Positions 2,390-64,000 of a stretch of 64,000 bases of DNA are shown here, in pieces. This DNA comes from Pelomyxa schiedti (taxonomy: Eukaryota; Protista; Evosea): positions 153,031 to 217,030 of the forward strand of contig JAHLWZ010000792.1 in NCBI GenBank assembly GCA_020536535.1, in the 5' to 3' direction. How positions within the stretch are numbered: the first letter of the stretch is position 1; the number at the start of each line of letters is the position of its first letter. Both the position numbers and the translations under genes were made by a program. The notes under the pieces were generated by a model. The model was given only the letters and a program-made list of their open reading frames with translations, was not told the origin of the DNA and did no database searches.

Positions 2390-5358
<2,969 letters not shown>

Positions 5359-59974: not shown

Positions 59975-62076
59975 TCAACAGTAAATCTGTAGCCTCTGAA
60001 CTATGTGGCTTCTGCAAATGGGGCATTGAGTTTTTGTGTAGGAAGCTGAACAGCTACTACACATCACATGCCCACAGGGTACAAACGCAACCTGTGGTGG
60101 CGTAGGCTTCGCCAAACAAAGCGGGCATTCCGCCTTGTTGGCTGACGAAGAAGCTGAGTTCTCTGGGTGGTGATTTCTAGGAGCTGATGGTTGAGGACCC
60201 GGAACTGTGGCTGTGTCTTCAACATACCAGTGTATCTCCGGGAATTGTGACAGGTACTCCGGTTTGGAGAGTTCTGCGAGCAGTGCGTTCTCTTCTGCCC
60301 CCAGAAGAGTGACGCAAAGCTCCAACTTCTCTTTGGTGTCTACGAGAGTATTTTCCTCTGATGGTAATACTTTCCGCCTTCTCATCTTCTTCAGTTCGGC
60401 CTCTACGTCATCAAGTTGGTCTTCAGCCTCCACTCGGCGGTTTCTAACCTGTAGCAAATTTTAGTATTACAGCAAGCATTTCAACAGACTTGGGTGAGCC
60501 GTTCAAGATTGGCTTCAGTTGATTTTTCAACTTGGTGAAAGTGATTGACAAGTCCCTTGAATATATTCAGTTTATCTTCTATCTGTTTATTTGCATTGAT
60601 TTCTCGTTGTGCATCTAACTCAAACTCGTGCATCCTATGCATAGCATCAGTTTTCACTGCCAACGCCCGTTCGGCAATGCTGTTTAGTACACGAATTTCC
60701 TTTTCAAGCAGTTCGTGAGTCCGCTGAATTTGGGTTTCCACCTCTTGGTGCAATTGGGTAAGAGGTTTTGTGAGTCCCACAAGTGTTTCTTGCCCCTGCA
60801 ACAAGGAGTGACCCACAGCGTCAGATGATAAGGGTGAGCCATCGTCACAATTCCGCGACTTCGATAGTAGGTCAAATGCAGCCGAGAGAGCCTGATCTAG
60901 TTCGACTACTGTTGATTTCCGCTGTGAGAGAAGACTAGTGTCCACAGATTTTGACTCCCTGATAGATTTCTGAAATGTATCCAATTTATTTTGCAGAGCA
61001 GATACGTTTTCTAGTGTAGCATCAAGTGCGGCACTGTGTGTGGCCAGTCTGTCGGTTTTCTTTAAGCGACCTGAGGTTGCCAAGTATTTCTCACCCGTTT
61101 GAGCAATATCTTGCAACGTATGAGAGAGGTTACGGCACATTTCTTCTCGGGCAACAGTTTTCTCACTTAAAGTATATTGTAACACACCCAGCGTCTCCAG
61201 TTGATTTGCCACCCCAGTGAGTTTTGCAATGGTTGGCCACACGTTTGGCTGCTGTGCGGGTGTTTGAATAGGGTGACCACTAGCCACTTTAACGAGGTTT
61301 GCACTTGAAGTTGCGATTGTATTTGTGGTAGAAATGGAATGCAATTTGGTGTTTGCAGTTGCAGTAGCCGCAGTTGCAGACGGAATTGGCGTGGCAACAG
61401 AAGAATGTGAATTTGTAGAAGTAGCAGAGTCAACTCTGCTGGGGACTGGCCGCCTCTCAATGTTTTTGAACCACACCAACTCAGGCATCGGTGAGCTCAA
61501 GTGAGCCAGCGTCTTGTCGAAAAGTTCTATTGTTCCATGAATAATCGCGCACGCCGGGGCCGTGTTTGGGTGACTGGCCCTCGCAGTGTAAAAAGTGACA
61601 AAGTTAGAGTCCACGGCGTCGGCGGCAGTCATCGGCACAAACAGTGCCGAAAAGTCGATGAACTTTCGGCGCAGCCCGGCCACGCAGCCCGCGGCGCGGG
61701 CCTGGGCCGCCTCCAAGGCAGCCAGCTCGGCGAGGGAGGCGGCGGCGCCGGGCGCGCACATGGCCTGGCACTCGCGCTTGAGGGCGCCGGTGAGGGAGAC
61801 CAGGGCGGCGGCGGCGACGTCGGCGGCGAGCTGCATGGTGGTGCGGCACTCGAGGGCGTAGCACTGGGGGCCGCGGTTGCCCGCGTCGTGGGTGGCGATG
61901 CCCACGCCGTTGGCCGCCGCGCCGAGGGCGTTGCTGCGCGCGGGGGTGTGGGTGTGCGGCCCGGGGAGGCGCAGCGAGCCGATCTGCGCGGCGATGTGGT
62001 CCAAGGTGGCTGCCTCTGGGAGTACGAGGGTGGTGAATGCCAAACGGGCTACACCCAGGGCTGGCTGGTTGGCCAT
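59975..62076 (-). CDS. Coiled-coil protein with C-terminal C3HC4 RING finger (putative E3 ligase), two exons
   Basis: The 531-aa ORF splices (intron about 60489-60449, phase 0) to an exon ending CPLC...PCGHVMCSSC...CPICRSHIVQRLQIYC*. Confidence 0.85.
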
Positions 62077-62194
62077 CTCGCGGGAACGGGAAAAAGAAAG
62101 GGTTGATAAACTTCACCGAAAAGAACCGGGCAGGACAACAACATCGGAGGCCTCACTACCACAATGGCCCACGATATAATTCATACCAGAGAAT

Positions 62195-62203
62195 AAAAAA
62201 AAA
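62195..62203 (-). terminator. Oligo-T (T9) putative Pol III terminator of the permuted tRNA-Asp unit
   Basis: A9 on the plus strand, about 28 nt downstream of the 5' half on the minus strand. Confidence 0.6.
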
Positions 62204-62231
62204 GAAGCAAGTGGTTGCACTAGGTGAAACT

Positions 62232-62311
62232 AGACATACTACCATTATACTAGCAGAGGAAGGAAAATCCCTCTGCCTGGGAATCGAACCCAGATCGTCT
62301 GCGTGACAGGC
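62232..62311 (-). tRNA. Circularly permuted tRNA-Asp(GTC): 3' half 62311-62269, 9-nt spacer, 5' half 62259-62232, junction 29/30
   Basis: Joining the 5' half to the 3' half gives CCTCTGC-TA-GTAT-AATGGTA-GTAT-G-TCT^GC-CTGTCAC-GCAGA-CGAT-CTGGG-TTCGATT-CCCAG-GCAGAGG-G. This has a 7/7 acceptor stem, 5/5 anticodon stem, 5/5 T stem and G73. Confidence 0.8.
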
Positions 62312-62439
62312 GATGCATCACCACAGTTGTTTGGATTTGTTGTTATGAAGCACTTGCCGAAAGAAGCCCCAGTGAGACGGTTCTTTTTTGGTCTGAAAAA
62401 TACCCGGCAGTGACTTATGGGAGCACACCGAAGAGGGAG

Positions 62440-62446
62440 AAAAAAA
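62440..62446 (-). terminator. Oligo-T (T7) putative Pol III terminator of the permuted TTG tRNA unit
   Basis: A7 on the plus strand, about 32 nt downstream of the 5' half and at an equivalent position to the other copy. Confidence 0.6.
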
Positions 62447-62478
62447 CCACACAGCAAGTGGTTGCACTCGGTGAAACA

Positions 62479-62558
62479 AGCTGTACTTACCATTATACTA
62501 ACAAAGGAGAAAGCCTCCCCTGTCTGGGAGTCGAACCCAGATCTGCCGAGCCAAATTC
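62479..62558 (-). tRNA. Circularly permuted tRNA with TTG anticodon (nominally Gln; His/Asp-like body): 3' half 62558-62516, 8-nt spacer, 5' half 62507-62479
   Basis: Joined sequence CCTTTGT-TA-GTAT-AATGGTAA-GTAC-A-GCT^GA-ATTTGGC-TCGGC-AGAT-CTGGG-TTCGACT-CCCAG-ACAGGGG-A. All stems pair (three G-U in the acceptor and anticodon stems, one more in the D stem). A32 and G37 are atypical for Gln. Confidence 0.65.
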
Positions 62559-62723
62559 GATGTATCACCGCAGCGATGTAGGTTTTATTATTGTGTTATC
62601 CACAGCACTTGCCCGAAAATCAGCTCCCCTGAGCCAAATACTTACTACGACAGCCATTCCCGCACTGCCTTATGGGCCACAAAAAGTCTAATTAATTTTT
62701 GGCTTTTTCTGCGAGTGCTCGAC

Positions 62724-64000
62724 ATGGCAGGAGGTGAATCTTTGCGGGTCGCGGCGTCCGTACTTGCGAACGCGGGATCGAGGCTGGATAAGTGCACAGA
62801 TGAATCGTTCCGCAAGCTATTGGGCTGGGCCGACGTCTTCGATAAAACGGTGCAGTCGGGGGGTGGGGGGTGTCATTGGAGAGCGGGGCGGGGCCGGAAA
62901 TTATTCAGCATCTTGATCTTGATTTTGTTTGTTTGTTCGTTTTGTTGTCTCACTGAGTCGTGGGTTTGTGTGTTCACAGATTCATGGCGGTGGACAAACT
63001 ACTCAGGATGCTGCTGCCAAACAATACAGGAATTTGTTCAAACTTCACCCTGCTTTGAGGTAGTAGTATGCCCCAGACCATAACTAGTTAATTGGTTACC
63101 ATTTATCTTATTAATATTTTGAGGCACGTGAAGTTTGTTTCTATTTAATAGGCAGCTTATTTCTGTACTGGAGTCGCACATAATTAATTTCACAAGAAAC
63201 ATTGACCTTGAGAACTGCACTATGAGAAATGCTATCTTGAAAATCTTACTCAACAACCCAACGATGTCTTGTCATGGACTAGTTCTGGTGATGAAAGAAT
63301 ATTCCAAATCCACTCGAGGAAAAGTTCCTTTGCATGTTGCAATAACTGAGGTAGAACACCTGCATTGTTCCATTTTTTTATAATGCTGTGCAACTTCTAA
63401 CTGCAAAGGACTGTTATCAAACCACCAACCTAGCCTACCAGCTGCACTTTCTGGGTTCCACCTGTGAGAACTACTTGCTCCCCAAGCTCCCTCTTCCCCG
63501 TCAAGAAGACGTTCCGGCAAGTTTGGTACCCGTAGACACACCAACATCGGAGCCATTCGTCACTCCCATGGACTGGGGGAAGGCCAATAGCAGTTCATCC
63601 GCCTTTGGTAAACTGCTTCACAGTGAATTGCATCGACTGGCTGCAAATTACACGTCCAGCCAGGAAGCTTCCCATACTTTACTAGACACATTCGAAACAA
63701 ATCTCACTGAGCAACTCGCAAGTGTTCCTAGAGTGGTATGTACACTCCCAAAGCAAATTTCCCACATCACCACAGTATTGATAACCACCGCACAACAGGA
63801 AATCGCTTGTGTTGCACTCTGCACTGCCTATTCCAGTTCCTTCCCGGAAAACGCAGTTTGCCGTCATATCTATGGGTGCTGCAATATATTAACACGGTGC
63901 TTATGCTCAGCAAGGGAACACCTGTGGCACATAAACAGCCAATTGTTGGAGTGCACTTGCGCCACAAGCACCACTCTCCAAATAGTACGCCTTTGTCCCC
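62724..64000 (+). CDS. Hypothetical protein, weakly FANCF-like N-terminus; runs off the window end
   Basis: MAGGESLRVAASVLANAGS...ESFRKLLGWADVF and ILKILLNNPTMS loosely recall FANCF (RRALQWARY; LLENRAL). Spliceable exons continue downstream. Confidence 0.4.

Follow-up and report, generated by a model that had tools for sequence, protein, structure and literature searches.

Two tandem permuted tRNA genes of Pelomyxa schiedti with a junction at position 29/30 and a predicted bipartite leader:trailer arm

Introduction

[quoted passage not shown] Their hosts are Cyanidioschyzon merolae, Ostreococcus/Micromonas, the Bigelowiella nucleomorph and Thermofilum pendens, bulge-helix-bulge (BHB)-type motifs are predicted at the junction of the published genes, and experiments in red and green algae have demonstrated a circular intermediate (PMC3978253). 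A second group of disrupted tRNAs, the split tRNAs of archaea, is held together by complementary leader and trailer sequences and has a BHB junction, which in some cases lies at 29/30 (PMC4090602). According to the lines that PMC3978253 devotes to them, a two-piece tmRNA is produced from permuted ssrA genes in other systems (Keiler et al. 2000), and the nucleomorph of Guillardia theta possesses ectopic tRNA introns lacking a defined BHB (Kawach et al. 2005).

Here we describe two permuted tRNA units found in a window of 64,000 nucleotides, that is, the whole stretch of Pelomyxa schiedti DNA that was analyzed (contig JAHLWZ010000792.1, positions 153,031 to 217,030 of the forward strand). In the literature searched, no paper links Pelomyxa with permuted genes, the genome paper of P. 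schiedti never mentions tRNA, and the papers since 2018 that use the permuted-gene term deal with algae, archaea or other topics. When metagenomes were scanned for the permuted T-arm-to-D-arm order, at least 99 of the loci listed (at least 120) were ordinary tandem tRNA arrays, and no relative of these units was among them.

Materials and Methods

The tRNA stems were checked by coordinates, with the two halves left unjoined in silico. For the BHB test, all pairs of cut sites in both precursors were enumerated for a 3-nt bulge, a 4-bp helix and a 3-nt bulge, each strand of the canonical geometry consisting, in order, of an outer helix, 4 nt of central helix, a bulge of 3 nt whose second base is followed by the cut, and another outer helix. 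The RNA data are contigs, not reads, of four oligo-dT-primed single-cell libraries made from one sample; the contigs retain adaptor letters of Smart-seq2 and Nextera, which are also the methods applied to P. schiedti (PMC8887013). Libraries primed in this way favor polyadenylated molecules, possibly discarded by-products, and give no amounts.

Results

The two permuted units are arranged in tandem on the minus strand between 62614 and 62195, with about 250 bp between them, and all features given below lie on that strand. One unit corresponds to an Asp tRNA with the anticodon GUC (62358-62204) and the other, its paralogue, carries the anticodon UUG (62614-62447). In both, the order is leader, 3' half (positions 30-73), linker of 8-9 nt, 5' half (positions 1-29), trailer and oligo-T, so that the 3' half precedes the 5' half and the intervening sequence is found at the acceptor end, as in a circular permutation.

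In the Asp unit, the segment map and the pair list delimit a leader of 47 nt (62312..62358), the RNA 5' end being G62358. According to the stem check and the RNA contigs, the 3' half (62269..62311) runs from G30 at 62311 to the discriminator G73 at 62269 and contains the anticodon loop CUGUCAC (GUC), the T arm and the 3' acceptor strand. The segment map and the contigs place next a 9-nt linker, AUUUUCCUU, which leads from G73 to C1 (62260..62268). The 5' half (62232..62259), with U29 at 62232 in the stem check, comprises the acceptor strand CCUCUGC, a D arm with G10-U25, and U27, C28 and U29, and is followed by a trailer of 28 nt (62204..62231) and by a run of nine T (62195..62203), read from the sequence as a putative Pol III-type terminator. 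In the UUG unit, a leader of 56 nt (62559..62614; RNA 5' end G62614) precedes the 3' half (62516..62558), which is covered by RNA contigs, extends from G30 at 62558 to the discriminator A73, and includes the anticodon loop AUUUGGC (UUG), the T arm and the 3' acceptor strand; its A58 (62531) shows an A/G mix, which may be due to modification or to an allele. The linker of 8 nt (62508..62515, from the segment map), the 5' half (62479..62507; U29 at 62479) and the trailer of 32 nt (62447..62478) follow, with a run of seven T directly after the trailer (62446-62440).

The locus is nuclear DNA of the archamoeba, since the window contains an EF2 exon (3132-4715) with 97% identity to the NCBI entry 'elongation factor 2 [Pelomyxa schiedti]', a protein whose gene is on contig JAHLWZ010000792.1 of assembly GCA_020536535.1. 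The neighboring ORFs (60481-62076 and 62724-63080) have no exact product on record, and motif searches of the window returned no further copy of the trailer or of the T arm. ARAGORN and Rfam, the latter at gathering thresholds and at E up to 10 on 62000-62800, reported no tRNA, ribozyme or other family; the silence of both programs at the two units is as expected for permuted genes, and the sole Rfam match at relaxed E was a chance snoRNA (E 7.9). A flanking self-cleaving ribozyme was considered and set aside, being unsupported by Rfam, even though such models would have difficulty in detecting a ribozyme divided between leader and trailer.

The preliminary description had predicted precursor 5' ends near 62358 and 62613. 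In the RNA contigs the Asp RNA meets the template-switch oligo at 62358 (runs X1 and X2) and the UUG RNA at 62614 (runs X1 and X4), which matches the first prediction exactly and the second to within one nucleotide. The RNA starts lie 1 nt (Asp) and 2 nt (UUG) before GCAAGUG, and hence the motif is transcribed in both units; a start downstream of it, which had been named as evidence against the earlier interpretation, is not what the contigs show. Upstream of each start a conserved block, CCCATAAGNCANTGC, is found at a distance of 48-63 nt, followed by an A/T-rich stretch near -30. This block reads CCCATAAGTCACTGC in the Asp unit (62407..62421, 49-63 nt before the RNA start) and CCCATAAGGCAGTGC in the UUG unit (62662..62676, 48-62 nt before the RNA start), and is a candidate external promoter element. 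Judged from the sequence, the transcript is probably of the Pol III type and driven by upstream elements.

A canonical cloverleaf is reconstituted from the two halves of each unit, with all pairs present in both in the acceptor stem (7/7), D stem (4/4), anticodon stem (5/5) and T stem (5/5), together with an anticodon loop of 7 nt containing U33, GG in the D loop and UUCGA in the T loop. The stem differences between the Asp and UUG paralogues are compensatory. G73, GUC, C38 and G10-U25, which we take to be the identity set of yeast tRNA-Asp, are all present in the sequence of the Asp unit, and the UUG unit shows several oddities for a Gln tRNA, namely C1-G72, two G.U pairs in the acceptor stem, A32, G37 and A73. 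The position of the junction at 29/30 is forced in the Asp unit, because A41 pairs only with U29 of the 5' half.

Leader and trailer are complementary to each other next to the junction and again at the ends of the transcript, as the preliminary description of this DNA had proposed. The GGTGA/TCACC pairing at the junction is present in both units (62322-62318 with 62227-62223 in Asp, 62569-62565 with 62474-62470 in UUG), and the longer pairing of about 9 bp claimed for the UUG copy is recovered by the repeat finder as an arm of 10 nt at 90%. The distal pairing of GCAAGTG with CACTTGC is also recovered, as an arm of 10 nt at 90% in Asp and of 7/7 in UUG, and its placement directly ahead of the oligo-T is very nearly correct, with 3 nt (Asp) and 7 nt (UUG) between arm and T run. 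When the cloverleaf is enforced, the predicted pairing extends beyond that first account in both units: trailer positions +2..+13 pair with leader positions -4..-16 around GGUGA/UCACC, and trailer positions +19..+26 (CACUUGCU) pair with the first 8 nt of the transcript. In Asp, the distal arm is formed by G-GCAAGUG of the leader (62358-62351, GCAAGTG itself at 62357-62351) and by 62213-62206 of the trailer (CACTTGC at 62213-62207), and the proximal arm by 62327-62315 of the leader (GGUGA core at 62322-62318) and by +2..+13 of the trailer (62230-62219), leaving AUC (62314-62312) unpaired before G30. In UUG, the distal arm pairs GGCAAGUG of the leader (62613-62606, GCAAGTG itself at 62612-62606) with 62460-62453 of the trailer (CACTTGC at 62460-62454), and the proximal arm pairs 62575-62561 with +1..+14 of the trailer (62478-62465), leaving the two final nucleotides of the leader, UC (62560-62559), unpaired.

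The arm therefore has two parts, about 11-13 bp close to the junction and 8 bp at the transcript ends, for a total of about 20 bp, and its register is identical in the Asp and UUG units. In the middle of the leader, 22-31 nt are not paired to the trailer and include an A-rich segment of 22-30 nt; this unpaired stretch faces a conserved unpaired GCAAC in the trailer, located in Asp at 62218-62214 between the proximal and distal arms. The calculated energy of the leader:trailer duplex is -20.1 kcal/mol in Asp, equaled or surpassed by 4 of 2000 shuffles, and -24.2 kcal/mol in UUG, equaled or surpassed by 41 of 2000. At paired positions the two units differ by U-G/U-A, U-A/U-G and U.U to G-C, changes by which pairing is kept or gained, never lost. 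As the units are paralogues with identical helix cores, the two arms are not two independent observations and their conservation is not a proof of covariation. The predicted association of the two pieces amounts to -15.6 / -11.3 kcal/mol with leader and trailer versus -7.1 / -3.6 kcal/mol without them, that is, the arm makes it two to three times stronger than the tRNA stems alone.

Two competing local hairpins were also observed, one combining C28-U29 with the trailer (CUNG-UUUCAC-CNAG, with a double change from A:U to U:G) and the other resembling a T arm within the trailer (GUUUC-ACCNAGU-GCAAC), adjoining the terminal helix of 7-8 bp. Both could be alternative states.

Conservation between the two units is patchy, not uniform, which speaks for constraint on the conserved blocks: identity reaches 10/10 at the start of the leader, 13/15 (87%) at its end and 24/26 (92%) in the trailer, and falls to 53% in the middle of the leader, 44% in the linker and 48-62% in the outside flanks. 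Constraint of this kind might also be exerted by transcription, with GGCAAGTGCT at the start acting as an initiator or pseudo-A-box, GTGCAACCACTTGC before the T run acting as a terminator-proximal element, and the complementarity being incidental. In fact, the blocks are conserved as sequence, the unpaired GCAAC included; GGCAAGTG, which in our own reading is loosely A-box-like, stands exactly at the RNA start, and further promoter-like conserved blocks are found upstream. Nevertheless, we consider this explanation very improbable: by our own estimate, a perfect complement of 7-8 nt between the transcript start and a trailer of 28-32 nt has a chance of about 0.005, the duplex energies are better than those of 98-99.8% of the shuffles, and both the second helix of 11-13 bp and the pair-preserving differences would be left unexplained. 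Moreover, termination by Pol III requires the T run alone.

The preliminary description had found no way to draw a strict 3-4-3 BHB at 29/30, and the full enumeration agrees. At this position neither unit provides a 4-bp central helix with flanking helices, the central helix having 0/4 pairs in Asp and 1/4 in UUG when checked by hand, and no BHB motif with both flanking helices exists at a homologous place in both units. A canonical BHB at another position had been named as evidence that would speak against the earlier interpretation, and none common to both units was detected. One BHB-like match in Asp lies one base away, with its 3' cut following G30; because the UUG unit lacks it and cleavage there would remove G30, this match was rejected. 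On the first strand of the junction a single nucleotide separates U29 from the arm, and on the second AUC precedes G30 (Asp), an architecture best described as a three-way junction between the nicked anticodon stem and the leader:trailer arm. To our knowledge, no described enzyme cuts a three-way junction of this kind within a tRNA anticodon stem.

These results bear on whether the units could mature as the algal genes do, by cutting of leader and trailer, ligation of the ends to a circle, and subsequent opening of the linker by RNase P and RNase Z. It is the only route that has been shown experimentally for permuted tRNAs, and relaxed 'no H' forms of the motif are admitted in the literature (PMC3978253), but here the endonuclease would have to accept a very relaxed motif, as the central helix is nearly absent and the enumeration yielded no 4/4 helix, and the eukaryotic enzymes described so far, apart from that of Cyanidioschyzon, find their site by measuring to 37/38 (PMC3978253).

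The RNA contigs provide information on the order of events. One UUG contig (62453-62614) begins with the leader, continues through the 3' and 5' halves, and stops in the trailer at the final base that pairs in the terminal helix, from which it follows that the two UUG halves are carried by a single linear precursor. In the Asp unit only the leader and the 3' half were seen in RNA contigs: in X1 and X2 these start at 62358, include the intact leader and the 3' half down to G73 (62269), and then continue with non-templated CC and 25 A, CCA(n) in the RNA versus AUUUUCC in the genome after G73. The simplest reading is that the contigs end where the RNA was cut after the discriminator, CCA was added, and a poly(A) tail permitted oligo-dT priming; the anchored VN of the primer covers the two bases beside the A run, on which X1 and X2 agree and which are consistent with CCA. 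These contigs thus represent an upstream piece in which the linker has been cut and CCA added while the original 5' end is kept, and consequently, in at least some molecules, the acceptor 3' end is matured with the leader attached and without circularization. Neither a 29/30 joint nor a circle nor a 5' piece nor the mature tRNA was found in the contigs of the four runs, and oligo-dT libraries rarely show joints and cannot be expected to show mature tRNA.

A Y-RNA-like tRNA mimic was also considered for these RNAs and rejected: the anticodon hairpins are complete and differ in a compensatory manner, the acceptor linker is cut, and CCA is added.

Were the algal route followed, the leader-bearing, CCA-tailed Asp RNA would be off-pathway, an RNase Z product of the linear precursor that has been tagged with poly(A) for decay. 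Substrates of nuclear surveillance are polyadenylated in the TRAMP/exosome pathway, and the captured Asp RNA resembles them in this respect. On the other side, in two runs the CCA-tailed species prevails among the Asp contigs, and no go-back joint or circle appeared in the four runs, a weak argument given how rarely such libraries show one. Weighing this together with the junction, we regard maturation by the algal route as unlikely.

The same RNAs might belong to dispensable or decaying paralogues that are transcribed, partly processed and destroyed, with the identity of leader and trailer due to shared ancestry or gene conversion. All the RNAs seen may be surveillance substrates, as the polyadenylated Asp contigs would allow, the UUG unit is unusual for a Gln tRNA, and just two paralogous copies are available. 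However, compensatory changes have preserved all the stems, no Asp identity element has been lost, the RNA is accepted by RNase Z and the CCA-adding enzyme, and both starts are preceded, at a fixed distance, by the conserved upstream block. In addition, an identity of 92% in the trailer and of 87-100% at the leader ends, compared with 44-62% between and around them, argues for selection, and decay seems to us distinctly unlikely.

It is also conceivable that the halves are never ligated, the leader, 3' half and CCA staying paired with the 5' half and trailer to yield a tRNA with an extra arm at 29/30, similar to two-piece tmRNA. The acceptor piece expected in this case is present, with its original 5' end, intact leader and CCA 3' end, no splicing signal is apparent, no 29/30 joint occurs in the contigs, and the arm adds about 8 kcal/mol of predicted stability between the pieces. 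The missing joint, nevertheless, says little, because these libraries cannot detect mature tRNAs; the captured piece carries a poly(A) tail, its partner 5' piece is absent from the contigs, and, judged from ribosome-tRNA structures, an arm of about 20 bp branching off halfway along the anticodon stem would be expected to collide with the ribosome in its A, P and E sites. We therefore hold a permanently two-piece tRNA to be improbable, and a later ligation of positions 29 and 30 is our preferred reading.

Discussion

[quoted passage not shown] The primary transcript would start 1-2 nt before GCAAGUG, end in oligo-U, and fold into a normal cloverleaf whose anticodon stem is broken at 29/30 by the two-part leader:trailer arm, the role of the arm presumably being to hold the tRNA halves in register. 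The linker at the acceptor end would then be opened while the leader is still attached, by an RNase Z-type 3' cut after position 73 with CCA addition, as seen in Asp, and by a putative RNase P cut at position 1, leaving a two-piece complex similar to a split tRNA. The flaps, 1 nt and 3 nt from the arm, might next be cut at the three-way junction by an enzyme that does not read a BHB, either a relaxed, structure-guided splicing endonuclease or another nuclease, and an RNA ligase would join U29 to G30, with ...GUCU-GCCUGUCAC... as the predicted joint in Asp. The product could finally be used in translation.

The order proposed for these steps has a parallel in budding yeast, in which end maturation and CCA addition normally precede splicing. 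A permuted gene in a cell with a yeast-like order would accordingly pass through a two-piece state, not through a circle. Whether the route is new to any organism, in the sense that the linker is removed and CCA added first and the tRNA is either completed at 29/30 without a BHB or its stem never sealed, is a stronger claim, which we consider possible but doubtful.

With regard to its origin, the arm is most simply a remnant of an intron-like hairpin. The earlier suggestion of a hairpin intron opened at its apex would, in evolutionary terms, fit the bipartite helix and the A-rich leader segment, which lies where the apical part would sit.

If the halves are ligated, a eukaryote recognizes tRNA splice sites by a means other than the 37/38 ruler and the BHB. 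If they are not, a two-piece tRNA exists, and it would be the first natural two-piece cytoplasmic tRNA. Either outcome bears on the origin and tolerance of disrupted tRNA genes. In addition, the tRNA sets of protists may look incomplete because standard tRNA finders miss permuted genes such as these.

Among the systems described previously, the ectopic introns of Guillardia theta, as far as they are portrayed in PMC3978253, share with the Pelomyxa units an interruption at a non-canonical position in a eukaryote and no recognizable BHB, which implies a non-standard recognition, but they are ordinary cis introns of another lineage. Two-piece tmRNA is similar in its permuted order, in the cut within the loop that joins the acceptor strands, in an upstream piece that bears CCA, and in the pairing of the original transcript ends; in contrast to the Pelomyxa units, it is bacterial or organellar and not a decoding tRNA, and its pieces are known to stay unligated, which in Pelomyxa may be one option.

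The proposed two-piece complex of Pelomyxa would also have, once the linker is cut, the same topology as the archaeal split tRNAs of Nanoarchaeum equitans and Caldivirga maquilingensis, the latter including Ala tRNAs split at 29/30 (PMC4090602). In split tRNAs, however, each half has a gene and a promoter of its own, and the junction forms a BHB cut by the archaeal endonuclease, whereas Pelomyxa, a eukaryote, has one gene and one transcript per tRNA and no BHB; indeed, a single UUG transcript spans both halves, and the linkers measure 8-9 nt.

In gene layout the units resemble the permuted genes of algae and the archaeon, in which the 3' half likewise precedes the 5' half in one transcription unit, with a short intervening sequence at the acceptor end (8-9 nt in Pelomyxa, within the known range of 1-74; PMC3978253), a T run downstream, promoter-like sequence upstream, CCA not encoded, and a leader-trailer pairing that adjoins the junction. 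So far such genes have come from a few algae and one archaeon and have always been explained by a BHB-reading endonuclease and a circular intermediate. The amoebozoan case, whose host is neither an alga nor an archaeon, differs threefold, in a junction at 29/30 inside the anticodon stem, in the absence of a BHB of any listed form, and in an RNA species in which the ends are processed, with the linker cut and CCA added, before any joining or circularization. To these differences is added a long leader (47-56 nt) that takes part in a bipartite arm of about 20 bp reaching to the very ends of the transcript.

Results and Discussion

The permuted Asp-GUC tRNA gene (Asp unit) and its paralog with a UUG anticodon (UUG unit) have in common a conserved upstream block, CCCATAAGNCANTGC, which lies on the minus strand at 62407-62421 and 62662-62676, respectively, 48-63 nt 5' of the mapped RNA starts. 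A second block common to both units on this strand, CTCA..GGGG..GCT, occupies about -22 to -8 from each RNA start, and an A/T-rich sequence is found near -30 in both cases. Elements arranged in this way are reminiscent of an external (snRNA-type) Pol III promoter, and a promoter of this kind would explain how transcription is initiated in a permuted tRNA gene, in which the B box is placed before the A box.

[quoted passage not shown] The trailers of the two units display only two differences, and both fall on the same hairpin pair, which is A:U in the Asp unit and U:G in the UUG unit. Regarding the 3' end of the UUG-unit RNA, two independent RNA contigs end at or near window position 62453, where base pairing in the terminal leader:trailer helix stops; for one contig this is the outright end, and for the other it is so only after correction for Nextera adaptor letters aligned out to 62449. 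These ends would fit, albeit weakly, with 3' trimming to the terminal helix.

In RNA contigs from two runs, the UUG unit carries G instead of the reference A at tRNA position 58 (window 62531) and, in the same two runs, U instead of the reference A at leader position -3 (62561). A third run keeps the reference base at 62561, and its contig end exactly adjoins 62531. The differences point either to another copy or allele or, for A58 only, to the reverse-transcription signature of m1A58. The UUG tRNA (62479-62558) looks like a remoulded Asp/Glu-type tRNA, with the D and T arms of the Asp unit and with features unusual for a Gln tRNA (C1-G72, A32, G37, A73 and an acceptor stem containing two G.U pairs); its identity as a Gln tRNA is not assured.

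Directly 3' of the tRNA pair, on the minus strand, is a 531-codon open reading frame (60481-62076), which has no Pfam match and whose exact product is absent from records. The G+C content of its 5' part reaches 78% (61700-62000), far higher than that of the surroundings.

Outside the window, a tRNA-shaped element in permuted order was found within a tRNA gene array on the minus strand of metagenome contig OGWD01001176.1 (locus L061, 1880-1962), with no family match in Rfam. In its fold (-33.1 kcal/mol, z -3.1) a UUCG loop caps the acceptor stem and an 8-bp helix formed by both ends replaces the anticodon loop, and the element is similar to the tRNA-like module found in bacterial Y RNAs.
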